Shown: piece after piece, positions 3,001 to 64,000 of the stretch
Layout: each line of letters opens with the position of its first letter
How positions within the stretch are numbered: the stretch's first letter is position 1
Notes under the pieces: model-generated
Told to the model about the DNA's origin: nothing
The model's database searches: none
What the model saw: only the letters and a program-made list of their open reading frames with translations
Assembly: GCA_965649825.1 (NCBI GenBank)
Contig: OZ287699.1
Span: 1,535,287-1,599,286 of the forward strand
DNA: 64,000 nt
Reading direction: 5' to 3'
Origin: Penicillus capitatus
Lineage: Eukaryota > Plantae > Chlorophyta
Translations under genes and position numbers: made by a program

Positions 3001-4566
3001 CCACTGAAACAGAACCGCTCGTGTTGTTGTGGATCGCTCCTCCATGCGATCTCGCTAAGCAAACACGTTTCTAGGTGACCAAGGAGAACCGTTTTAGGCG
3101 TGTGCGCGACAATGAATTTATCGTGGTGTATTTTCGTATCGAGAATCTCTAACCCCTTGATGGATTTCAGTATCAGCCGAGACCCAGTGACCATGCTCTT
3201 GACAATCACCTGAGCGAATGCCACACAATTACGAGATGAGTTGTCTTGACAATGAAACGACCGAGCTGTGGTTAATATGTGTAAACTCAAATGTCTTTGA
3301 ATGGATGTACTTGCGCAAATAGACGTCGAGCAGTTCCACACCTCCCGCGCCTGTGCCGATGGCGATCTTGGATCCGTCTTCTTTCCATGCAAGGCAGGTG
3401 ACTGGAGAAAGATTTTGAATCTGCAAGACGGAGCAATGGCCTCGTGTTGCACTGTCGTTTAGACAAACCGTTTGTTTGACAACTCTTGTCCACGTTTTGG
3501 ATATCTGATCGCGGCACAGAATGGACAGGGTGTCCATGCCAGTAAGAATGGCTGTATCCCCGACCGAACTGAAACAGGCAGTGTTGTACATTTCTTGTGC
3601 CTCTTTCCCGCCCATCTCCGTCAATTGACAGCCCCCGAAATCGTAAAACACTGCCTGACCAGTCACATCGTCGATCGATTTCGTGACACGTTTCACGGTG
3701 ACTGGCCTTATGATCCAAACCGATGACGACAAGACACTGACCACAGGAAGATGCTCGCGGGATGCAGTGGTGTTGCGTTATCTGCTGAAATCTATACGCC
3801 GTCGTCGTTTCGTCTCTGACTGCCTTTTCTACCGTCCCGTTCAACAAGACGACCTGAGAACGAGCGTCGTTGTTTGTTCAGCAATCGACCCTACTTACGA
3901 AAACGAGAGAAATGCCACAGTTGACGACAATGTGAATGGCCTCGACCGGTATCTCCGGCGACGATACATGGATCTGCGCACTCTTGTTTCCCGTCGTAAT
4001 CCCTGATCGAATGACGCCGTCGATCCCTCCGTAGTAAAGTGTGTCTGGCGAAGAACGCGGCCAAGTAAGTGCCGTGATCGACGAAGTGCTCTGGAACTTA
4101 TTGCAAATCGCCTTCTTCGTCCCCCAGTCCTCTCCTAGCCTAAGGAGTTCGCAAGTCCACAATCCTGCAAGCTGCCTCTGTTTACCGATAGACGAAGACG
4201 CAGTTATCGCTCTGCGCGACAGCGAGCTTTGTCGAATCCGGACTGAAAGCCAATGCCCGTATGGAATAGACGGCGGCTGCGTTTGTTCCCAGCGCCTTTG
4301 TCTTGAACTTGTCTTTCTTCTCGCCTGGACACCAAGACACTCGAAACACCGAAACCGACTCCTGACGTCGTCTGCCTTGCTCGTCAAACAGGTAGACGAT
4401 ACGGTCCGCTTTCGCCACAGCGAGTTTCAAACTGCACCCGATTGCCGATTTCATCGACAGTGGCGGACAAATTGGTGGTTGACTTGTTGGGTGACCAGGC
4501 GATTGCCCAGACGACATGCAGTTCGGTCTTCGGTGCGATGACAGTATTCAGATGCCGTAACTGCAT
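1..4566 (-). CDS. IFT172: Intraflagellar transport protein 172 (multi-exon, runs off the left edge of the window)
   Basis: Start MQLRHLNTVIAP..AIAWSPN|LKLAVAKADRIVYLFDEQG..DKFKTKA..IRALAFSPDSTKLAVAQSDNCVFVYR|LGEDWGTKKAICNKF matches the IFT172 WD40 N-terminus. TPR-like exons follow (ERQWGDALFAQHQYEAAADRYVQAG). The GT-AG introns I checked restore frame. Coordinates span exons and introns. Confidence 0.92.
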
Positions 4567-5476: not shown

Positions 5477-6081
5477 TGGCACTGGACTCAGCCAGATTTA
5501 CATCAAAGCGCTGCTATAAATTTTGTTTGTGTGTTCGCCTTCGATGCTCAGAGAAAGGACGTCGAGACTCTTGATGAACGCATTTCGTGCGATATGCGGT
5601 ACGGTGATATGTCTTGGTCTCCCTTCTTCCGCGTTTAAAGGGATTATTATCAACCCTTTTGCGATAAAGAAGATCTTTCACGTTGGTTGGCATATCTTGC
5701 CTACGGAGACAGGAAAAATGCGCGTACACGACGACGTGTCATGGCACCGAATACACTGGTCGATGAGTACGACTGACTGCCCTCAGGAAGTTGAGCAATT
5801 CTGTCAGCTGCATAGCGAGCCGCCAGTCAAGATATTCCACTGGATCGCAGTCTGGGGATGACCAGATCTTGGACACCAAATCTGTCAACAGTGTTTCTTC
5901 GGTGGCTTCTGGGATTCCCAGAGGATGCTTCGTTGCTGTGTTGTGTAGATGAAGACTTTAAATCGTTCAGCAAATCGCAGAAATCACTGCACAGAGTGCG
6001 GAATTTTGAAGAGAAAAGTACTCGATTCGCAGACGCCGAGAGAAGGGTAAGGCAGCCACTGTGGTCGGCACGATGCGGTTA

Positions 6082-6187
6082 GTGGTGGATCAGGATCATA
6101 CGGTCCGCAGCCGCGGTGGTGGATCAGGATCATACGGTCCGCAGCCGCGGTGGTGGATCAGGATCATACGGTCTGCAGCCGCGGTGG
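6082..6187. repeat. 34-bp tandem repeat, 3.1 copies, inside imperfect inverted arms (6046-6066 / 6190-6214)
   Basis: Unit GTGGTGGATCAGGATCATACGGTCCGCAGCCGCG starts at 6082, 6116 and 6150, with one substitution in copy 3. Confidence 0.95.
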
Positions 6188-6260
6188 CCAGCACGGTGGC
6201 TGCAAACCGTACCCACTATTTATTGAGACTTCGCGTGGCATTTGTCAGACAGACATCGAA

Positions 6261-6794
6261 ATGGCAAATCGATCGACGCGTGCGCAAGACCGCATAACCC
6301 CTGAACAGTCTCACCTGTTAAACGAAGAGATCGCAGAATGCCGCGATCTCCATCGTTTTTTAACAAAACGATCCGCGAGTTCGACTTGCGCCTTTCGCAA
6401 GGCACACGCAACATCGAGGGGAGAGAAGAATTTTTTACACGACCATGTACGTGCTGACAATGCACAAGAACTCTGCTAACTTCTTTTTAGTCGTCCTTAG
6501 GTCAGAAGAACCTGCTCGAAGAGTGACGGAGACATATGTTGACAGTGTACGTTCAGCGATGAAGGCGCTTGAAGCTAGATTAGGCCGAATCAAGGCCGTT
6601 CTGGATGCCAGCCCCGCATTGGCCGATTCGATAGAGGCCAGCGCAGACCGTAAGATGTTGGAAGTTTGTTCGAAATAACGGAAGAGATAAAGATTATGGA
6701 CGCCGAAATCCAGAAGAAGACTGCCGCTGTGGATGCCCTTGTCAATAAGGCTCAAGGGGCTATGGACCATTTCTTTAAAGGCGTTGGAATGTAA
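6261..6794 (+). pseudogene. Unknown two-exon coiled-coil family member 'G' (two 1-nt homopolymer frameshifts)
   Basis: Exon 1 6261-6446, phase-1 intron 6447-6490, exon 2 6491-6794. Restoring one T (run at 6356-6361) and one A (~6673-6675) gives MANRSTR..ITPEQSHLLNEEIAECRDLHRFFNKTIREFDLRLSQGTRNIEGREEFFTRP|FVLR..RRVTETYVD..AMDHFFKGVGM*, colinear with member H. TATTTATT is at 6217 and TGTAA overlaps the stop. Confidence 0.75.
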
Positions 6795-7299: not shown

Positions 7300-8400
7300 A
7301 GAGTTTGATATTGTTTTGACGAGCCAAAAGGGTGAAGAGATTTGCAGAATCGAACGATTTGAAGCAAAAGCGATGCGACTGCAGAAGCAGACAACATCTT
7401 ATAGCCATCTTACAGAGATCGTCTATGAACCAGAGTCGCTCGTAGATGTGCCGATTTGCCAAGCAGAGTCAGAGACATGTAGTTCTGGATGGAAACGCGT
7501 CAGGAAGAGCCGTCGATGGTAGGCCACTGTCCTGGGTCTTCTGCAGACATGGAGAGTGCGATCATCTTCTGGCGGTATTCGGATGGTGTTCCCGTCTATA
7601 GATGGAGTTCCATCTTCTCTCTGGTCGGCAATGAAGAACATCAAGCAGAAATTCCGTCAAAGACCAATGAGGCATCAGCATTGCTCTGTACACCTCGCTC
7701 AGCAGAGGACGTCATGAACGATGACGTCTGCTCACATAGATGACATAAACGGTCATCGAATGGAAGAGAATCTGTCGAGATCTGCCAAACTGCGAGATGC
7801 CCCTCTGCACGATGTCCCACAACATTTGCAGCTCTTTCCTCAACTATGCGGGAACTTAAGAATTTTGTCCCGCTTCCCATTACACCTTCCTGCAAAGAAA
7901 GAGATTTGACTTTGGCTGTCAAAGCGATTGGCATCAGTTTCAGAGGCGTGCTCAATGTTGTGGGAATGTACGTACCCTAGAGATCTTAACCCTCCAAGAG
8001 GAGACAGTGCTGGGCGCATCACGCATTCAAATGATCGTTCTCACACAGGTGATGCTGTAATTGGCCTGGCTGCTGAAAGACTCGGATCTCATGTCGTCTG
8101 TCCCGGAATGACATTGGCGTCCATTTCCTCAACTATGTCCTTCGCAGAGGCAGCCATCTGTCCAACCGTCTACATCACAGTCGACATGGCACTACTCAAA
8201 TGCTCTGAGATGCAGCATGGGGAATCTTACTGGTCCACGGAGCGACAGGAGGCGTCGGGATGGCAGCTTTGCAGGTTATTCCGTCTAAACGGCAAGGGTA
8301 ATCGCCACTGCAGGATCTCCTTAGAAGAGGCACGTGCTGCGTACCATGGGAATGGACACAATGCTCAATTCACGATCCGTCGATTTCTGTGAAGGCAGAG
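7300..8400 (+). pseudogene. Type I PKS fragment (linker + enoyl-reductase domain), frameshifted
   Basis: LAVKAIGISFRGVLNVVGMY/PRDLNPPRGDSAG..GDAVIGLAAERLGSHVVC..SFAEAAICPTVYITVDMAL is a degenerate PKS ER motif set. Confidence 0.75.
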
Positions 8401-9184: not shown

Positions 9185-9384
9185 TTATTCGCATGTTATT
9201 CTTCTTGAAATACGGTCGGGTTCACAAGTATACAAAGCATCTATAGATCCTTCGAGGAGCTCCAAACTAGAATACAAGTGCTTGTGATCGACTTCAATCT
9301 GTTGATACATTGTTTTTACAGCCTCCATTGATCGGCGGAGGCCATCAACCGCCTCTTGAATCAGCTGGGTGCAGTATTCTTTGC
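9185..9384 (-). pseudogene. C-terminal part of coiled-coil family member 'A'
   Basis: RRSMEAVKTMYQQIEVDHKHLYSSLELL aligns with C (KESLAEAEAKYEAIEAESEDLEASVRFL). It is joined to a truncated ~200-bp element. Confidence 0.45.
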
Positions 9385-9543
9385 GGCTTCCTGATGGGAC
9401 AGCGGTCCGAGGGTGCCGAGGGTACTTGACCGACCGGACTCGCCATGCAATCAGTCTTAGCTTCGACTCGACACAGTTTTCCTCCGCCTTCGCACACGCG
9501 TTGGCGCGCACGCGGCGCGCCAGAGTCAGACGAATCCCCGTCA
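9385..9543 (-). mobile_element. ~200-bp TG...CA element (probable solo LTR), copy A, one end deleted
   Basis: Starts TGACGGGG on the minus strand and is colinear with copies D/E up to CCCATCAGGAAGC, where similarity stops. Confidence 0.8.
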
Positions 9544-9779
9544 GGAACTGGCTCTCTTTCTGTTCGAACAAACAGGTAGACGTCGTCAATAAGCACACGA
9601 CTGGATTAGTCCTCGCGTCCTCTGCGACGGAAATTGTGTTTCTCTCCGTTTCGACAAACGGGTCGACGTCGTCCATAAACACACGACTGCTATGGCCTCG
9701 TCGCGTTTATACGACGGTTCCTTGCAATCTCCTACTACATTGATGAAATCATAAACGGTTTGATGCATTCAATAGACGG

Positions 9780-10400
9780 TTCGATGCATTCAATGAACCG
9801 TAGAGTATTCCGGGCGATGTCAAGGATCGGGCTCATAGGGCCACAGACTCTGAGATCTTCTGCAAAAGAGACGTCTCTTGAATTGAAGACTGAAGAGATT
9901 CCGGCCAGTCTTCGCAGATTGTGTGTTTTCTTGGGCCTTCTGCCATCGTAAATATCTTCAGTCTATTGAAACTGGCTAATTCAACAAAAGGCCTATCCCA
10001 CTCCTCCAGCTGCAGAATGCACCAACATGGCATCACCTTTGCTGAATGTCTCGACACGGTGCAGATCTGTATCGACAGTGATGAAGACAGTGGTAACCGT
10101 CGCTGCTTGGCATGGTGACATTGTAGTGCGGGAGGTGACCACATGAGATCCAAGACAGCCAGCTGCCAGTCCAAAACAGCCTCTCCACGCCTTTGCCTGT
10201 GGCACTGATCCCCGAACAGTCACCTTTAGGAGGACTTGGGTCGCCAGGGTACATCCCCGAGATTTTCAACGCATCTCTAAAATTCACACCAACGGCCTTG
10301 ATTTCCACCAGCAAAACATCCGGGTCAACAGGCGTCTGGGTGTCTAAGGCCTGAGGGAAGAGATTCTATAATGCTCCCCATGGACTGGGAAGAAGTTAAA
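9780..10400 (-). pseudogene. Type I PKS enoyl-reductase fragment, frameshifted with stops
   Basis: LVEIKAVGVNFRDALKISGMYPGDPSPPKGDCSG / CFGLAAGCLGSHVVTS..TTVFITVD..GDAMLVHSAAGGVG*. Confidence 0.85.
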
Positions 10401-10959: not shown

Positions 10960-11960
10960 GGAGGTTCTGTTGATCCGTTCAGTGAAAACCGTCGAATCGA
11001 GTCTGCAAAATGCATACGCTTGGTTGTTCTGTTTCTGGTGAGCGTGTGGGTAACGGTTGGCTTTCAGGTTACGTAGGGGATATTCCTTCAAACCTTCCGA
11101 CTCCTGTTCTCTCATACTGCAGCCCGGAAGACCTTCAGAGAATTGAAGATAAGACAATGTTCCGTCGACTGTCTAAATGTCTTTCGGGTCTCATTCGCTG
11201 TGTCTTAGGGAAAAATCAGGCAGAGATATCCGTTGGGATACCTGGAAGATCTGGAAGCGCATGTACGTCTCGAAATATGGAAACCCCAATCCGGATGAGG
11301 TACCGTTCGTCCACAACACATCTTTCTATGGTGTGGCGACGTGACAGGTTCCCGAACTGAGGGAATTGCCAGAAAAATCGGTGGATTTAGATAACCTGCC
11401 AGAACACTTAGGTACTGCATTGCTGTTCTGCACAGTCAGCCAGATGACGGATTTGAGAGTGTAGGTGACTATCGAGCTCTGTACGAACGCAAAGTGCAAC
11501 AGACAGATGCCCAAAGGGCAAAATTGACAGAGAGACTAAGTGATGGGGGTACACCAACGGTTCTGGCCCCGCGGACCGGACACGCTGTCCGCTTCCTGAT
11601 GGGACGGCGGTCCGCGGGTGCCGACGGGTATAAAGCTGACGTCACGTCCTGCCTGTAGCATTTGCATTTGCTCAGGTTCGTCCCTCCGCTTCGCCGTGGC
11701 GCGTGCGCGCGACGCGGTGCGTCTTTCGTTTGGCATCTCCGTCACTAAGAAAACTGAAGGAAGAACAAGAGCTGTCCAGAGAAGAGACAAAAGCTAAAGT
11801 GACAGCGTCCTCCAGTGACCACAAGCTCTTCAAAACAATATCTGTTGCAGAGAATCGACAAGATCGTGCCCAAAAAGCGACGTCCGCGACGTTTTCGTCC
11901 GCAAAGTTCTACAACGCCTGCTACTAGTTGCAAGAGCTCTACTGGTAGATGCACTCCAGC
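10960..11960 (+). CDS. Elongin-A-domain protein (multi-exon), coding exon interrupted by the ~200-bp element; boundaries approximate
   Basis: YVGDIPSNLPTPVLSYCSPEDLQRIEDKT|..WDTWKIWKRMY..|GDYRALYERKVQQTDAQRAKLTERL[insertion]RKLKEEQE follows the Elongin A (SIII A3) motif pattern. Confidence 0.6.
11541..11744 (-). mobile_element. ~200-bp TG...CA element (probable solo LTR), copy B, 204 bp
   Basis: Ends TGATGGGG / CTCCGTCA are flanked by a perfect 5-bp duplication CTAAG (11536-11540, 11745-11749). Near-identical to copy C in the opposite orientation. Confidence 0.9.
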
Positions 11961-17300: not shown

Positions 17301-17516
17301 GCGACGGATGGCAAGTGATCGGAGGATCAGCGACGGATGGCAAGTGATCGGAGGATCAGCGACGGATGGCAAGTGATCGGAGGATCAGCGACGGATGGCA
17401 AGTGATCGGAGGATCAGCGACGGATGGCAAGTGATCGGAGGATCAGCGACGGATGGCAAGTGATCGGAGGATCAGCGACGGATGGCAAGTGATCGGAGGA
17501 TCAGCGACGGATGGCA
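17301..17516. repeat. 29-bp perfect minisatellite, 7 full copies plus 13 bp
   Basis: GCGACGGATGGCAAGTGATCGGAGGATCA at 17301+29n, with no spacers. It ends 2 bp before TATTTATT (17519). Confidence 0.97.
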
Positions 17517-17575: not shown

Positions 17576-18272
17576 ATGACGTCGTATCGCATGACGAAAT
17601 ATATGAAGAAGCAGCTCGTGCGTGACATTCGAGCTTGCGAGGACTTGAAGCTGCTCGTAAAGAAATACAAAGGCGAATTTGGTGATCTGCGTAATACGCA
17701 GATTACCAATACGATTGCTGACGAGGAGGACTTTCTAAGTGCGTAGAATTGTTTATACCATCATCTTACTTCTCACTTCCCTTCGCCTGTAGGTAACTGA
17801 CGGGGATGCCAAACGAAAGACGCACCGCGTCGCGCGCACGCGCCACGGCGAAGCGGAGGGACGAACCTGAGCAAATGCTACAGCAGGGCGTGACATCAGC
17901 TTTATACCCGTCGGCACCCGCGGACCGCCGTCCCATCAGGAAGCGGACAGCGTGTCCGGTCCGCGGGGCCAGAACCGTTGGTGTACCCCCATCAGTAACG
18001 AAGACGGACAAAGTTCTTCGCAACTGCGCATGACAATTAATTACGTTGACGCTTGCACTGACGCGTTTAATAAAGTGGCACAGAGAATAGAACACCTCGA
18101 GAAAAATCTACAGTCGGGGTTTAAACAAGACATCCAGCGCCGCATGTTGCATGCTGCCAAAGAATCTCTGGCGGAAGCTGAGGCGAAATACGAGGCCATC
18201 GAAGCGGAATCAGAAGATTTGGAAGCTTCCGTGCGTTTCCTTCTTGAGACGTTGAGCAGTTTCACAGCGTGA
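17576..18272 (+). CDS. Unknown two-exon coiled-coil family member 'C' (~146 aa if the 197-bp insertion is removed)
   Basis: Exon 1 17576-17738 MTSYRMTKYMKKQLVRDIRACEDL..LRNTQITNTIADEEDFL, phase-1 intron 17739-17792. Exon 2 SN[insertion]EDG..RMTINYVDACTDAFNKVAQRIEHLEKNL..SFTA* is open once the element plus one TSD copy is removed. Confidence 0.75.
17798..17994 (+). mobile_element. ~200-bp TG...CA element (probable solo LTR), copy C, 197 bp
   Basis: Termini TGACGGGG...CCCCATCA with a perfect 5-bp TSD GTAAC (17793-17797, 17995-17999). Confidence 0.9.
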
Positions 18273-24200: not shown

Positions 24201-24509
24201 AGTAAGTGATGCCGGCGGCAATGGAGATGGGTCCGCGACCATCCCAAGGCTTCGTCTAACCGTTGTGATCCTCCATTCTGCATGCACCGCTAAGCAGCCA
24301 GAAGTATCGCGAGCTGCACGATGACTTCTAAGATGCGGGACTGCTGACTGGCAATGTGACCGTCCGGGAAAATCCGTCGTGTCTCGTGGTGACGACAGAG
24401 GTGTCCCATTCCATGCTCTACGAGAATCGGAGCATCATCCGGTGCCGTTGCAGCACTATATCTTTTCGGTAGGAGCTGATGGAATGAATGTACATGACGA
24501 TCGACGAAA

Positions 24510-24740
24510 AGGGTACGGTCCTCCAGCACGAATAAATACACGCTGCGGTCCGTATTCACCGCGTTTGGGCACGATGCGGTTAGCATGGATCCTACAGTGC
24601 GGTCCGTATCCACCGCGTTTGGGCACGATGCGGTTAGCATAGATCGAGATCTAGATCAGGATCCATGCTAACCGCATCGTGCCCAACACGGTGAATACGG
24701 ACCGCAGCGTGTATTTATTAGTGCTGGAGGACCGTACCCT
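24510..24740. repeat. 231-bp imperfect palindrome (arms 24510-24593 / 24658-24740) whose spacer holds a direct copy of part of one arm and a GATC x3 centre
   Basis: AGGGTACGGTCCTCCAGCACGAATAAATACACGCTGCGGTCCGTATTCACC...GGATCCT is the reverse complement of 24658-24740 with ~3 differences. 24544-24586 recurs at 24598-24640 (54-bp period). Confidence 0.95.
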
Positions 24741-24768
24741 GCATTCATTTGTGCTCGAGAGACGAGAG

Positions 24769-25297
24769 ATGGCGAATCGGTTGAATACGAGAAACGCTAA
24801 CGAAGGCATCACACAAGATCAAAGCAATGCTTTGAACGACGAGATTGCGAGGAACAAAGAACTGCATTCGTTTTTCCACCGGATGATACACCAAGAAAAT
24901 TTACGCGTGCCGCAGATAACATATCATATCGCCCAGCGAGAAAAGTTCTTCGAGGAACCTTGTGAGTACTTCATATCTGGTCTATCTGTTTGCAGTTTTT
25001 TCTGTATTTGATGAAAGCCGGCAAGTCAACGTACCAAGGCTCACGCAGACGTACGTTGAAGCGACGATGCCGACAATCGAAGGCCTAAGCGCGAGAATCC
25101 TTCGCATAGATGCCGAGCTGCGGAACAGCAATCATGAACTCATGATATTTCGTTCAGTCCTGGATAGCATGAAAGACATAATGAAAACTGTGAGAGAAAC
25201 GGATATTATCGTCAAGGAAAAAACAAAAACAGTAGAGGACAGTCTGTCCAAGATTCAAACAACAATTAACCTTTTCTTTGAAAATATTGGCCTCTAA
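24769..25297 (+). CDS. Unknown two-exon coiled-coil family member 'H' (~164 aa, apparently intact)
   Basis: Exon 1 24769-24961, phase-1 intron 24962-24995 (GTGAGT...TTGCAG, 34 nt), exon 2 24996-25297: MANRLNTR..ITQDQSNALNDEIARNKELHSFF..LRVPQITYHIAQREKFFEEP|FFSV..PRLTQTYVEA..INLFFENIGL*. TATTTATT is at 24712. Confidence 0.75.
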
Positions 25298-27178: not shown

Positions 27179-28178
27179 CGCATGGACATTCATTGGACAT
27201 CTCAAGGACAAGAAAACCATCTGTCAACGACGAATAGCCCAGATACGTCGTCTCAGTCATAGTCACTGGGGTTCCTCTCCGTGGGTAGCAAAGAGACTGA
27301 TGGATGCATGCATCCTACCCGTATGTCCATACGGCTCTCCGATCTATAACCCACTTTCTCGAGGTCGCTCATCACGCCTCCAAATCCTTCGCTCCAGCTA
27401 TAGGACCGGATGCATTTACATCACTGGAGCACATCGCACAACGCCCACGTGTTCGGTACTGCCGCTTGCTGGACTCCATCCACCAGAGGCCGACATCTTA
27501 GACCGTCTCACAAGCTCCAAACATCTATGGCACGCACCTACCTACAAGGCCTACAGGGAACAAACCGCGCTACATCTCACCAACGGAACACCAAGAAACG
27601 ATCTTGAAACGCATTGCTGCTAAGGACTGGATACCAGAGGACGTGCAACGTCTACTTCGAAAAGACATCAAACAAAGAAGACGCAGTCAACTATTTCAAG
27701 CCGCCCGCAAAGCTTACCTCACGACGCTCGTTTGCGACATCTGGAATAAAGACCCCAATGGACAAGCACTGAAAAAGACGAGATGGATTACAATGGCAAG
27801 TCTAGAGCAATCTTGGTTGAAACAGTTTTCAAGACCCAGTGTCACAAGGCTCGCACGCTTCCTCTCAGGACACTTTCCCATGAAGACATGCCTAGCACGA
27901 TTTCACAGCCTCGAGGAAGACACATCGTTATGCTGTCGATTTGGATGCGATCAAGAAGAAACGCGAGAACATCTTCTTAGCTGCCCGCAGCTAGCCAACC
28001 TCAGAGACAAGACAATCGGGTCTGAAAATTTTCCCCAAACATTGTCACGTAACTACCTTTTGCAACTCGACAATTTTCTGGAAAAAGCCAAAGTTACCCG
28101 AGTTTCCTTTTATTGGTAGTCTTACGAACCATGGGATATATCTCAGTGTGAACCCCATGTAAAATCACAATTAGAGAG
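27179..28178 (+). mobile_element. 5'-truncated copy of the LINE at 43821-48861 (3' 1.0 kb)
   Basis: Colinear with 47867-48861, with a 4-bp ACCT duplication frameshift near 27535. Flanked by a 15-bp TSD AGACACTTACCTTTT (27164-27178, 28179-28193). Confidence 0.95.
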
Positions 28179-29676
28179 AGACACTTACCTTTTGCCATAC
28201 CTGTTTAACGACAAGATGCTATCTATTATAGATGGCATCAGTGTGACTTTACAGTCGAATGAAACCAACTCATTATGAAAACGTACTTTATGTACAGCAA
28301 ACAAAGATTGGTGAATATGCTGACAGATCACTTACTGTAATCAAGGATCAAAGGCTCACCTGTGCGTTTGTTTCTTGTTCGTGCGGCAATACGGCGACAA
28401 TTGTCTGAGCGAATGGCGCTCAGCGCTGTGGTCTTAGTTGCCACATTGCTCGTCCTTTCATGAATGGTAACGTACGGGACACAGGAACAAAAAACGAATT
28501 GGCACCTGAAGAGCTCCAGACACATTCTCGAATAAAGTTCACTGTCCTGTCGTCTCTCAAGAAACCTCGACGAGAATTAGAACGCGAGTACAAATCGACA
28601 ATGGCGACATCTGCTGTTTGGCAGCTACAACGGTCATGTTAACGCGTCCAGAAAGCTGGCCAGTACCGTACGACAACGCACATGTCGCGTCAAAGCGCAA
28701 CTTAAGAACGATGCATGGGACAGTGAAGAGGGGGATTGAGCTTTCTTTCTCAATGTTGCGCGCATGCATCCCTAGACGTACGAGCAATCTCGGGTGAGAT
28801 CAGCTGAGACGTCGAGTCGTCTCACAATTCCCTCTAACATGTTTTACGTAGCCACGACGTCACCTAGATAATGAATATTGCTGTCGAATAGATTGCCCTG
28901 AATGCTTTGTTCACTGTCCATTGTTCAAAAAAACAAAGCATACAAGAAGAACATTGTCAGCAAGTGATACCTGCGCCGTATTCTCTTAGCAAATACGGTA
29001 AATCAAAGATCAATCAATATCTGCCGACGGGCAAACAATTCTGCTAGTCAAGGAACTATCGTCGGCGCTTGAATTGAAACTGCATATAAAAGCAAGTCGC
29101 AAACTTCAAAGAACTTTGGTCGGTCGATGGCCATACGACCAGGTCGCTAATCGAAGAATAGAAAAACTTGCAGTGGCGACTAAAACCAGAAACGGATACG
29201 GTACACTGATGCTTAACGGTTCTCTCTGAAAGCGGAGATCCCGCTGAAGAACGACAGCTTCTTCGGAAGACGCTTGAACTGAAGATGGGCGTCCCGAACT
29301 AGTGGGACCTCGTCCGCGTACGCGCCGACAGTGCGCCGACCGGCGACAAACTTGTCTATGGGTCAGCAAGAAACACTTCTAAAACTGTCTATGATGCCGA
29401 ACGCGAGTCGCTTGCCCGACTTTCGGGACTTCCCGTTGCGCGTCCGTGCTCAAGCATTCCACATCACATTCGTCGTATCGGCGCCAAGATAGTCCATCAA
29501 GATGGCTAAAATGCGACCTTCAGAGTGTTGGTTGTGTTGGATCAGGAAACGTCACTGTCGAATGACGAGACGTTATCCTATATAACGACGTACTGAGCAC
29601 CTGTAAAGAATACCCGTCCGACTCTCCTCGCATCGCAGCCTCGACGCGCTCGGACCAATCGCCGACCCTATCGGTC

Positions 29677-32080: not shown

Positions 32081-35000
32081 ATGCCAACCGTCTACCTCAC
32101 AGCAGATATGGCCTTCCATCATGCCGTCGACATACAAAAAGGAGATACTCTGCTGGTCCATGCTGCAACAGGAGGTGTCGCCATTGCAGCATTACATATT
32201 TTGAAGAATCTACAAGTAGAGATCTGCACCACAGTCGGCATCCCCTTCAAGAGAACACTCCTGAGATCGACGCACGGCGTCGCACGTGCTGTATCATCCA
32301 GAGATCTTCATTTTGTGGAGGACGTGACGTTGACGTCTCTGAATGGAATCAAGGCCGTAATGGATTCCTTAATGTCGCCAGGAATGGTGGCAGGCAGCTG
32401 CAGTTTACTGCAAAGAGGCGGTCACTTCATAGAGATCCCCAAAAGAGATATTTGGAGTGCTGGTCAGATGGAATATGAGAGATCAGATGTATACATTTCC
32501 ACACAGTTGCTGTCGGTTTCCTCCATCCCTATCTCCTCCAGCATTCTCTCCAACGCATTCAGAGAAATCTCAGTCGGCAACGCGTCCAGTCATTGCCAAG
32601 CGTAACGTACAGACTCAATGCTGTGTGTAGTATCTGCCTTCCGTGCCATGCCTCTGTCGAAACACATCGGAAAAATCGTGACAAGCAGGCGAGATGCATC
32701 TCTGATGTATGGAAACGTCAAGATCACCGGCGGATGCGGCAGTTTGGGATCTCTCATTGTAAGGTGGCTCATGACTAAAGGCGTCCACCACATTGTCCTT
32801 TTGGTCGGTTCGTTCACGCAACCAACAATTCTGTTGTCCAAGATATAGTCCAGATTGACAGTTCTCATAAGATCGTATCTTCTGTGCTGAGAGATCGTGC
32901 CGTAAGAGAAGACTTGTCGACGACGATCTGTCAAGAAACCAAGAGATCGATACCGTGATACATGCATCAGGGGGTACTTGTCGATGGAATGCTGCATCAT
33001 CAGTCCAAGAAGAATATTGCTTTGAGTTTTGGGGCCAAGTTGGGCTTTCTTGCAACGACAGCCGCCGTCCTGGAACGCGTGCCACTCAGGAAACATTTCT
33101 TGTTCTCATCTGTCGCATCGGTGCTCGGATCTGCCGGACAGAGAAACTACTGCATGGCGAAATATGCCCTCGATCATGCAGCTGTGCAATATACTAAGCA
33201 GGGAAGGCCACTCTCCAGCGTTTGGTGGGGAGCCTGGGCAGGAGCTGGAATGGCAGCACAGGAACGCAGCACCGTTGCCCGAGTCGAACGCATGGGAATG
33301 CACTTGATTCAACCAGAAATGGGCCTGATGACGCTGTCAGCTATACTGAGAGACTCCGTCTGCGACCACACAGCAATTGTTCCCCTCAACTGGCCCAGAT
33401 TGACATCGGCCAATCGAAATTCGGCAGCTGTTATCTTCTCTGAGAATGTCACGCTAGTCGACACACTACAGCAAGTATTGTTACACTCCCAGAATGCCGT
33501 TCCAACTGGAATCCAGGCTGACATAGTGATGACCACGGTGATGGAGGCCGTCCACAGCATTTTGAGAGTGTACGTGAGGACGATCCGCTCATGGATGCCG
33601 GACTCGATTCTCTCGGAGGCGTGGAACTATGCTCCGATCTGGAATCGAAAATCTGGCATAACGTTACCGAGCCGAGCACGCTCGTTTCTGACGATCCGAC
33701 TATCTCTGCCACTTCTCATTTCATCATATTTCTTCTTCGTCCCTCGTGTTCCGTCGATGTCCCTTTGCATCTCAAGGCAGATATCTCTAGAGAGGAGGCG
33801 ATGGCGATCGTGGCCATGGATGCACGTTTGGCTTCAGCGCGTGCTGCAGATGATGCCAGTCGTCCGGTGCTTCTCAATGGTTGTAACGTGGATTGGCAAC
33901 AGATCTACTACGGAGACCCGAAGCCGCAATTCGATGTCTTTCTGGAAGGCGTTAAGCAGTTTGATACGACTGCTTTTGGTTTTTCACACAAGGAGGCATC
34001 GACAATGGATCCTCAGCAACGAATGCTCCTACAATCCACAGGCTGCATTCTGTCCACCACCTCGACTGATTCTCTGGATCGCAGCCGTGTATTTGTCGGT
34101 GTCTCGTCACTGGACGATGATAGACTTCAACTCAAATACAACGGAAGGCAGATCTCGGACTATCGTGCCATCAGTGGGGCCATAAGTGTGACATCTGGGC
34201 GATTGTCTTATACATATAGACTAAGGGGGCCAGCCTGTACCGGAGATGTCGCATGCTCTTCTTTTCACATGGCCATGCTGTCATCAACGACACAGAGATG
34301 TCCGGCAGCTGTCAATGCAGGCATCAATATAGTATTGTAGCCTCACCCGCCTGTTACATTTCACAAAGCGGGACTGCTGTCGCGCGAAGGCCCACTGCAA
34401 GACACTGGATGCAGCTGCAGATGGGTATGTTCGTGCAGAAGGTTGTGCGTCATTCCTTCCGGTACTGGATTCCTATGAAGCAGATAAAGAAGTACTGGGC
34501 TATCTAAGAGGCATCGCTGTTCATTAAGATGACAGATCGAGTTCCTTGGCGGCACCCAATGGGCCTTCTCAACAGTCCGTGGCCAGAGAGGCACTCCAGA
34601 CTGCCAATCTCATGGATGATGATGTGACAGGCGTGTCTCTTCGTGGAACTGGAACCGGGTAGGGCGACTCTATTGAATTTGGAGCCATTTCCGGCGTCCT
34701 CTCTGATGCTGTGCACACTTCAGAAGGCGTCACACTGATCAGCAGCAAATCCTCGTCTGGTACATGCAGAAGCTGACGCTGGTGTTGTGGGATGTGTGGC
34801 TGCCTTGGACTTCCTCTCTTCACACGCAGTGCCAAGGATCTCACATTTGAGAACGCCGAATCCACATCTGGAGGACTTCAGAAGCATACCGATTCGATGG
34901 AACATCCCTCGAATGGCACAAGGACGCTGTTCTCAACAGCAGCATCGAATCTGTGACGTCTCCACTTTTGCATTCCAAGGCACCAATGCCCATGCCCTTC

Positions 35001-52700: not shown

Positions 52701-53370
52701 TTTTGCCTTGCAGATCTAATCCCCACATGCAGCCTCCATAGAGAGAAGAGAAGGTCACTCTCATCCACAATCTTGATTTCCCTCGTATTACGTGGAAACC
52801 GTTGATTGCATATCCTCCGAGCTATTGGATCTCTGCTTCGGTCAGATGCACTTTCTCCGCCTAATCCACAGGACCATTCATCGACCAAGATTCGGCAGCT
52901 TTTCTGGAGCGTCAGTCGCGTTATAAGTCCGGCAAGAAATTCACTAGAGGCGGATTTCGGTGAAATTTGGAGAGCGGTTCTTTACCCCACAGGTTTCAAA
53001 TAACATCTGACTGACCTTGTTGAAAATGAGCATGGTTGTCTGGAGCAGAATCACAAGACGAGGCCGAGAAATGTGTGCTCGAGCATATTCGAATCAAAGA
53101 CAGAAATGAGACACCGCTTTTGAGCATGCACAGAGCGTCGGTCAGATCCATTGTTTAAAACAAGCTCTTTAAAGGGAATCATTAGGGGTTTTAGGAAGCG
53201 CAAAGAATCAGCCAGCTCCACAGTTAAGGCAAACTTCTGTAAAGGGGTTTGATAGAGGATTCGAGAAGGCCCAGAGTCTCACTTAGCTCCCTTGTTTGCT
53301 GTTCTAAATCCTTTGGATCCTTTTTCATGTCTATCAATGTCGACCGCATGCCTTTAACCGCTTTCGACAA

Positions 53371-53576
53371 TGACGGGGATGCGACAGACTCTGGCGCGCC
53401 GCGAACGCGCCGACGCGTGTGCGAAGGCGGAGGAACACTGTCGAGTCGAAGCTAAGACTAATTACATGGCGCATCCCGTCGATTAAACACCCTCGGCGCC
53501 CGCGGACCGCTGTCATGTCAGGAAGCGGACAGCATGTCCGGTCCGCGGGGCCGCAACCGTTGTCCTCTACCCGTCA
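53371..53576 (+). mobile_element. ~200-bp TG...CA element (probable solo LTR), copy E, 206 bp
   Basis: TGACGGGG...TACCCGTCA, colinear with D and A. No TSD (GACAA vs GCTTT). Confidence 0.85.
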
Positions 53577-60340: not shown

Positions 60341-60505
60341 TGGCTGGCTGTGAGTGTGAGTGTGAGTGAGAGTGGCTGGCTGGCTGTGAGTGAGAGTGAG
60401 AGTGGCTGGCTGGCTGTGAGTGTGAGTGAGAGTGAGCATGGCTGGCTGTGAGTGTGAGTGAGCATGGCTGGCTGTCAGTAAGAGTGAGCATGGCTGTGAG
60501 CACAG
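60341..60505. repeat. Compound (GTGA[GT])n/(GGCT)n low-complexity tandem repeat
   Basis: Repeated TGGCTGGCTGTGAGTGTGAGTGAGAG units of variable length. Confidence 0.9.
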
Positions 60506-62726: not shown

Positions 62727-64000
62727 TCAATCATAGTATTCTTTAATTCGGCTCGAGTGAACTGGATTCCTCACTGGCCCATGAATACGCCATCTGCATC
62801 TTCCTACCCTCTCTGCTAACGTATATGGACCTCTCCATGTTGCAGGTTTGCCAGCTTCTGGGTAAAAGACTAGCACTCTTCTTCCAGTTCTTAAGGGTGG
62901 TGACGAGGCTGCGATTTTTCTGTGGCTTCGCTTCGTAGTGGCTTCTCTTGATTTTCTGCAATTTTGGATCGCCTTTGCCCTCCATGTCTTCAGTCTCTCG
63001 TTGTCGATTTGTTCTCCATTGCGTGTCACGCACCAAAAGAGCTCATTAGGCGTATATTTCGTTACGCCATGAACGGCATCATTGATTACGTCCTCGAGGC
63101 GCTTACTGTCGATCGGAAGCTCTTGGTTCGCGGTCATCTTTTCCACTCTCGTCTTGATGTTCCCGACAAGGCGCTCCACACGGCCATTAGTATGTGCGGT
63201 ATAGGTGGGAGAATAGTAATGTGTGATCTGCCGATCGGTGCAAAAGGCACGCAATAGACGACCACAAAATGCTTGGCCTTGATCTGAAAATATAGCTTCT
63301 ATGCCTCCATGTCTTGCCACGGTGGCATTCCACCATCTCGTGAGGGCCTTGATCACGGTTTCTTCGTTTGGGTACGTCGTTATCGTCAACTGGCAGAACC
63401 TGGTTAGCCCGTCGACGATTGCTAAGACGTGCTTGTTCTTCTTTTGATATCTTCCCAGCTTGATTGGTCCTAGGAAGTCGAGGAACAACATGTGGTTTGC
63501 CACGGGGCATTCGATGCCTCTCCATTCGTCTCTAAGACGGGGTCTGGCTCCTCTTTGACAACCCTCGCAGCTTCGCACGAACTCTTCAACATCCGTTCGG
63601 GCCGATGGCCATATGCTTCCGTCCCTTTTGAGGTGCTCCCATGTTCGTCAAGAGCTCCTGCAACGCCGCAGTTCTTCGGCTCAGTTCTGGAATGAAGTGT
63701 CGGGCCGCGTTGAGAGTCCCCAATAAACTCTGGAGCTCTCTCTTTGTCTCGATCGCGCCGCCCACCTTCCTTCTGCGTTCCCGCAGGTACCTCTCCGCAC
63801 TCACGCTTCCGCCGGATCTTAGTTCGTACCCCAGGAACTCCACCTCCGATTTCCCGGATTCGATCTTCTTCGACTGCACCTGCAGGCCATAGCTCTCCGA
63901 CGTTGTCAGCAAGCCTGCCGTTCGTACATCCAGTTCCCTTAGAGTCCGGCCCCCACAATCGCATCATCAAGATAATGTAAAACGGGATGGCCCGCGCAAG
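62727..64000 (-). mobile_element. Ty3/Gypsy pol: RT C-terminus joined directly to integrase (RNase H deleted); continues beyond the window
   Basis: YLDD at 63963-63974 (frameshift after it), VEFLGY, KRELQSLLGTLN; then WP..DVEEFVRSCEGCQ, LFLDFLGP, SDQG, NGRVER, WRGPY (integrase core open for 283 aa). Confidence 0.9.

Follow-up and report, generated by a model that had tools for sequence, protein, structure and literature searches.

Upstream activating sequences are exemplified by the CGG-type inverted half-sites of fungal zinc-cluster factors and by the G-box CACGTG. The ups classes upstream of Plasmodium var genes are conserved 5' flanks of a fast-evolving multigene family. Tandem repeats in yeast promoters reportedly change their unit number and tune expression, as Vinces et al. 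are said to have found in 2009. Tandem repeats in human promoters likewise vary in unit number and tune expression (PMC3566118).

The window analyzed here, a stretch of 64,000 nucleotides, comes from a 1.58-Mb contig (ENA metagenome assembly ERZ25074695), one end of which is 59-123 kb away. It proved to be eukaryotic, with short, broken open reading frames (ORFs) that 34-44-nt GT..AG introns restore to frame, a GC content of about 50%, CpG at expectation, and TpA depleted. Dynein heavy-chain genes were found at related loci, and the organism is therefore probably flagellated. A LINE at 43834-48782 contained two long ORFs, of which the second encodes endonuclease and reverse-transcriptase domains, and a 1-kb copy of part of it (27180-28183, 89% identity) was found just downstream of gene H. 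Further ORFs carried a ketoreductase (KR) domain of a polyketide or fatty-acid synthase (32962-34185, + strand) and an integrase core domain (62727-63578, - strand). Minisatellites were located at 17301-17516 (29 nt x7.4), 39561-39679 together with 39827-39862 (32 nt x3.7), 9740-9798 (21 nt x2.9), and 60341-60496 (26-36 nt), the first three adjoining members of the gene family described below other than G and H. Scans of the window against Rfam (gathering score) and for tRNAs gave no match and thus did not support a reading of the region as a structured RNA gene.

Genes G and H are two-exon genes encoding coiled-coil proteins of about 165 amino acids; the distance between them is 18 kb, and both belong to a cluster in which a profile of the coiled-coil exon detected at least seven family members within the window. 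When H was used as the sole query, a protein search returned only the self-match. Among 1.84 billion protein representatives, a profile of this kind retrieved nine proteins at E <= 0.001, all of them small ORFs, and the traceable members of these nine came from two ENA assemblies. Pfam and PDB profile searches of the family yielded no relative, only weak coiled-coil noise. Tracing protein matches back to their contigs enlarged the subfamily by three genes (K, M, and N), which share exon 1, the phase-1 intron, and exon 2 of G and H.

6261-6794, + strand: gene G; two exons, 44-nt phase-1 intron, two frameshifts relative to H, K, and M
24769-25297, + strand: gene H; exon 1 (24769-24961), 34-nt phase-1 intron (24962-24995), exon 2 (24996-25297); open, 164 aa
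L036 5937-6459: gene K; intact
L038 4437-5219: gene M; nearest relative of G, exon 2 interrupted
L039 from 4791: gene N; second assembly (ERZ26696514), one in-frame stop ahead of the conserved C-terminus

The five proteins are true paralogues, and the phase-1 intron is conserved among them. In the H protein, an N-terminal region leads into a coiled coil whose last residues are FFENIGL. Gene G carries one frameshift in each exon and is therefore probably a pseudogene. Base composition was equal in the two assemblies, and N may therefore be a paralogue from the same species and not an orthologue. Another family member, on the minus strand of L034 (3183-4305), is preceded by a palindrome (4148-4305) with 67-nt arms, 97% identical, and a 24-nt spacer, followed by TATAAAG and then a CT-rich array (23 nt x19); its exon 1 is interrupted by an in-frame stop, which only the assumption of an 18-nt intron would remove. 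On either side of family remnants at 8.5-9.7 kb of the window, segments 7876-8227 and 10332-10029 showed inverted translated similarity (41-57% over about 70 aa), which may reflect a larger inverted duplication.

A first-pass annotation of this DNA had considered 6046-6224, upstream of G, to be a rearranged version of the palindrome upstream of H, non-coding DNA that looked better conserved than the gene itself. It proposed a slippage-prone, conserved cis element (an element terminus, a replication or excision origin, or a promoter) that travels with the gene. In our judgment, the two regions are probably rearranged versions of one promoter module belonging to the subfamily of G, H, K, M, and N. 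This judgment is based on what was observed of their homology, position, orientation, and copy number, on their occurrence at these genes alone, and on the lack of features typical of transposons.

Both regions contain the 16-mer GGCACGATGCGGTTAG. The identity noted between 6067-6082, 24568-24583, and 24622-24637 was reproduced, all three on the + strand, and a fourth copy was added at 24668-24683(-), giving one copy upstream of G and three upstream of H. Four exact matches in the window compare with 0.01 expected and with none in 100 shuffles. When 187.6 kb of the genome was scanned allowing at most one mismatch, eight copies were obtained, every one of them upstream of G, H, M, or N. Within this sample, the proposal of a cis element travelling with the gene was thus borne out, with the element 5' of four G/H-type genes and nowhere else; the sharp shared boundary and target-site duplication that might have accompanied such a distribution were not found.

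G: one copy, + orientation; nearest motif edge 179 nt before the ATG
H: three copies, two + and one -; nearest edges 186, 132, and 86 nt before the ATG
M: three copies, all -; nearest edges 177, 123, and 69 nt before the ATG
N: one copy, + orientation; nearest edge 65 nt before the ATG

The distal copies occupy similar positions in G, H, and M (179, 186, and 177 nt), and H, M, and N have their gene-proximal copy at 65-86 nt from the ATG. An alignment of the eight units from the four genes showed 15 of 16 core columns to be invariant, with variable flanks. The center of the 16-mer, GCAC(G/A)(G/T)GC, is nearly self-complementary, and the form present in M and N, GCACGGTGC, is self-complementary at 8/9 positions, which would account for the tolerance of either orientation. 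Both orientations and a variable copy number (1, 3, 3, and 1 in G, H, M, and N) are tolerated, a statement about tolerance and not about activity. The near-self-complementary core fits a site for a dimeric binding protein, and we infer that the 16-mer may bind a transcription factor; to our knowledge, it matches no nameable factor site. Gene K does not carry the 16-mer, and the motif is therefore not obligatory for the subfamily. As N may belong to the same species, the conservation of the 16-mer is one between paralogues; moreover, G, M, and N may each have been damaged, in which case an argument from purifying selection would lose force.

Each of the five genes has a second element, TATTTAT(T/A), that starts 40-57 nt ahead of the ATG. 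We infer that TATTTAT would serve as a TATA box, with transcription starting downstream of it. Among the functions proposed for the region, a promoter is the only one that appears to fit, as the motif occurs at a constant distance from the ATG and in either orientation, upstream of the conserved TATTTAT. A third sequence, the TGACGATCGACGAA box, is common to the left arm of the H palindrome and the region upstream of K (L036 5764-5787) in the form of exact 11- and 12-mers; this box and TATTTAT are all that the K upstream region shares with H. The TGACGATCGACGAA box also resembles the first 20 nt of the G coding sequence.

The region upstream of G contains the following features.

6045-6071, + strand: left imperfect arm (GGGTAAGG plus GCAGCCACTGTGGTC...), 80% complementarity to the right arm
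6067-6082, + strand: the single 16-mer copy
6082-6187, + strand: tandem array, 34-nt period, 3.1 copies, 98% identity
6184-6214, + strand: right imperfect arm, ending in CCGTACCC, complementary to the left arm
6217-6224, + strand: TATA-like box TATTTATT, 44 nt before the ATG

The amplification of a 34-bp unit about three times, as described in the first-pass annotation, was recovered in this array, and the correspondence of the unit to the right arm of H with its middle removed also held: AGATCAGGATC (24653-24663) and ATACGGACCGCAGC (24694-24707) are 30 nt apart in H and adjacent in G. Relative to the 54-nt unit of the family, the 34-nt unit lacks the 20 nt that carry the 16-mer. Imperfect inverted arms do bracket the array, with 6052-6071 and 6184-6203 being 80% complementary and GGGTAAGG (6045-6052) opposing CCGTACCC (6207-6214) across it; the region folds weakly (z -2.95). 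When compared with the array of M, the G block 6058-6198 matched only in reverse orientation (69% over 141 nt, 86% over 43 nt), and 6201-6541 was collinear with M at 73%. Of the motif copies, G retains just the distal one, and the loss of both proximal copies would fit a decaying gene.

The region upstream of H is organized as follows.

24483-24760, + strand: upstream palindrome, read as an inverted duplication of the promoter module; left copy with two 54-nt units, right copy with one
24495-24508, + strand: TGACGATCGACGAA box, confined to the left arm
24544-24651, + strand: two 54-nt units in inverted orientation (left arm), with the 16-mers 24568-24583 and 24622-24637
24653-24710, + strand: one unit in gene-proximal orientation (right arm), with the 16-mer 24668-24683(-), 86 nt before the ATG
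24699-24759, + strand: 30-nt x2 tandem duplication (right arm), first copy with TATTTATT, second with the degenerate CATTCATT
24712-24719, + strand: TATTTATT, 57 nt before the ATG, in the first copy of the 30-nt x2 duplication

The palindrome measures 231-278 nt, with weaker pairing reaching about 24483-24750. Its outer arms (24510-24568 and 24682-24740) span 59 nt at 95% identity, its inner arms span 29 nt (100%) and 34 nt (91%), and its DNA fold was calculated at -118.5 kcal/mol (z -20). The left arm contains a 54-nt direct duplication, and the three 16-mers keep the 54-nt spacing observed in M, two of them being inverted. Read outward from the center, the left arm presents two units and then the TATTTATT-containing proximal sequence of the right arm, apart from an 18-nt insert difference. 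As the same proximal sequence is present in both arms, the palindrome would therefore be an inverted duplication of the whole promoter and no separate element. A divergent gene was searched for to the left of the palindromic regions of G and H and was not found.

The long arms of H would also suit a foldback or MITE-type element, or the terminus of a larger element carrying the gene, that was inserted or transposed with each gene copy. The H palindrome is near-perfect over 231 nt with sub-repeats in its arms, as in foldback elements; homologous units of about 0.8 kb, each comprising the module and the gene, are scattered across at least four contigs in non-homologous surroundings; and the genome holds short mobile elements that land beside family genes, as illustrated by a repeat designated element B. 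Terminal inverted repeats give a mixed picture, with arms in H and, weakly, in G and none in M and K. This explanation nevertheless appears rather unlikely to us. No target-site duplication was found at G, H, or M. Between members, homology does not reach beyond the outer edge of the module on one side or the stop codon on the other, 400-nt flanks scored at the level of shuffled sequence, and the outer limits vary from copy to copy. M contains direct repeats only, and K has neither palindrome nor 16-mer. The distance from motif to ATG is fixed in either orientation, and every copy in the 187.6 kb, a small sample, is associated with a family gene. Retrocopies are excluded in turn, since the gene copies retain their intron. 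An element terminus, one of the three functions initially considered, is accordingly unsupported in view of the absent target-site duplication, the absent flank homology, the lack of a common outer boundary, and the state of K. A replication or excision origin fared no better, as no replication or transposition gene is adjacent and K is without 16-mer and palindrome.

Element B, by contrast, has sharp ends and 5-bp duplications. It is 197-206 nt long, with TG..CA ends and a 7-8-nt terminal inverted repeat, and was located at the following positions.

17798-17994, + strand: full copy, window
11541-11744, - strand: full copy, window
38959-39164, + strand: full copy, window
53371-53576, + strand: full copy, window
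9398-9543, - strand: truncated copy, window
L032 10002-10207 and L035 1856-2061: copies elsewhere
L033 10241-10322, L034 10124-10270, L035 3002-3101, and L035 3371-3485: partial copies

Perfect 5-bp target duplications (GTAAC, CTTAG, GAACA, and GTTTT) flank 4/6 full copies. Given these duplications and its TG..CA ends, element B is therefore a mobile element and could be a solo LTR or a MITE; on the same grounds, this approximately 200-nt repeat was rejected as a second type of family promoter. It often abuts genes of the coiled-coil family, in either orientation. L034 10265-12309 is 91-95% identical to 35982-34093 of the window, both with a family gene and polyketide-synthase exons, and a partial element B at the 5' edge of the gene is present in L034 and absent from the window segment. 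In 9191-9543 and 53200-53526 of the window, the coiled-coil parts of two family members have the same orientation and the adjoining element B is inverted, a configuration that indicates either inversion or independent insertions at the same edge. The motif CGGWCCG / GACCGCWG is common to element B and the G/H module; with GACCGCWG counted 5 times overall against 4.7 expected, a link between the two through this motif is suggestive at most.

A hairpin origin or inverted terminal repeat of a linear virus-like element was likewise rejected, as the gene beside it encodes a coiled-coil protein of 164 aa for which Pfam and PDB gave no relative. A scan of viral contigs with the 16-mer gave 7 matches, none extending past 16-18 nt, which told against the terminus of a virus-like element as well; these 7 and the 23 viral matches of the element-B core, none longer than 16-24 nt, were attributed to chance. 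Metagenome contigs yielded 0 matches in a scan with the 16-mer plus CGGWCCG and 0 in a scan with the element-B core.

Comparison of the upstream regions between members qualified the first-pass statement that non-coding DNA is better conserved than the gene. G and H share 17 8-mers upstream (shuffle mean 0.7, maximum 4), as against 2 in exon 1 and 1 in exon 2, which is chance level. The statement therefore stands for exact blocks, with the reservation that the exon 1 proteins still align at 42-58% identity. The reading of the G region as a rearranged H palindrome was also upheld in part: the two regions are homologous and rearranged, but the polarity was not supported, as a direct array such as the one in M appears ancestral to both. 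In M, a direct 54-nt unit is repeated in 3.3 copies (L038 4219-4399) and carries three 16-mers. H has 54 nt x2 plus one inverted unit, G has 34 nt x3.1, and K has an array of 21 nt x4.3 at the same upstream place with no palindrome. This variation in copy number and unit length agrees with the predicted proneness to slippage.

Shared blocks of this kind might be functionless, as leftovers of duplicated 5' flanks kept alike by gene conversion between arms and between paralogues, in a repeat-rich, perhaps subtelomeric cluster. The clustering of G and H among at least seven members at 59-123 kb from the contig end would suit such a history, as would the 95-100% likeness of the H arms, which fits conversion within the palindrome, and the abundance of minisatellites in the genome. 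We nonetheless regard it as unlikely. Identity is confined to the 16-nt core and a few short blocks with divergent flanks, and no long conversion tracts are seen; recent gene conversion is therefore improbable as the sole cause. In addition, the core persists in M and N, which come from other contigs or from another assembly, though the proteins have drifted to 27-44% identity, and its position relative to the ATG is conserved.

The palindrome could, alternatively, be functional in itself, as a hairpin or cruciform yielding small RNAs that silence the family, or as a recombination or inversion hot spot that diversifies the cluster. Inverted repeats occur at H (231 nt), at N (arms of 18 and 19 nt, nested about the motif and the TATA-like box), and, as a remnant, at G; an unrelated palindrome precedes the family member of L034; and array blocks are inverted between G and M. 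Such a role seems quite improbable, however, given that no inverted repeat was found upstream of M and K, that the arm sequences of L034 and H are without clear homology, that the G fold is weak, and that Rfam provided no match.

Returning to the promoter module as the preferred reading, it would consist of one to three units of about 54 nt with the invariant 16-mer core, a candidate site for a dimeric factor, and of the TATTTAT box 40-57 nt before the ATG. Replication slippage and inversion would keep altering the number, length, and orientation of the units, because these are tandem and contain small internal palindromes. M would have retained the direct 3.3-copy array; in H, an inverted duplicate of the whole promoter would have produced the palindrome; and in G, a broken gene, the distal motif would have been retained next to an amplified unit already without the motif. 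A plain binding-site model needs no inverted repeats, yet these recur at the promoters of H, N, and the L034 family member. That these palindromes, together with the flips between direct and inverted arrays, represent a recurrent or regulated inversion or hairpin mechanism is a conjecture we consider very improbable; if true, such a mechanism would switch or diversify the expression of a clustered, fast-evolving eukaryotic gene family.

The conserved signal is real; its kind is ordinary, its shape unusual, and it is attached to an orphan gene family. For this family of an uncultured eukaryote, the analysis provides a clean, testable candidate cis-regulatory motif and a putative promoter layout. 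It would also illustrate the remodelling of a promoter into a long palindrome through slippage and inversion, and it serves genome scans as an instructive negative, in which a striking palindrome beside a gene was apparently not the end of a mobile element, the true short element B looking quite different.

Set beside foldback elements and MITEs, the H region is alike in its long inverted arms, internal sub-repeats, and almost absent loop; the G/H module differs in having no target-site duplication, no solitary copies in the 187.6 kb scanned, and no common termini, and other members carry the same sequence as direct repeats. The ups flanks of Plasmodium var genes resemble it in that the upstream blocks are more recognizable than the coding DNA and that the family is clustered near a contig end. 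Here, however, the family is tiny and made up of short coiled coils, apparently no surface antigens, with no sign of switching. Variable promoter tandem repeats offer a parallel in the placement of the array between the distal promoter and a TATA-like box, with 54x3.3, 34x3.1, and 21x4.3 among paralogues; in this subfamily the units are long (21-54 nt) and carry the conserved motif, and blocks are inverted, up to the 231-nt palindrome of H. With upstream activating sequences and repeated sites for dimeric factors, the module shares a short, near-self-complementary core in 1-3 copies and either orientation, placed at a fixed 65-190 nt from the ATG, ahead of a TATA-like box, and common to genes of one family. 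It differs from them in that its candidate site corresponds to no nameable factor.
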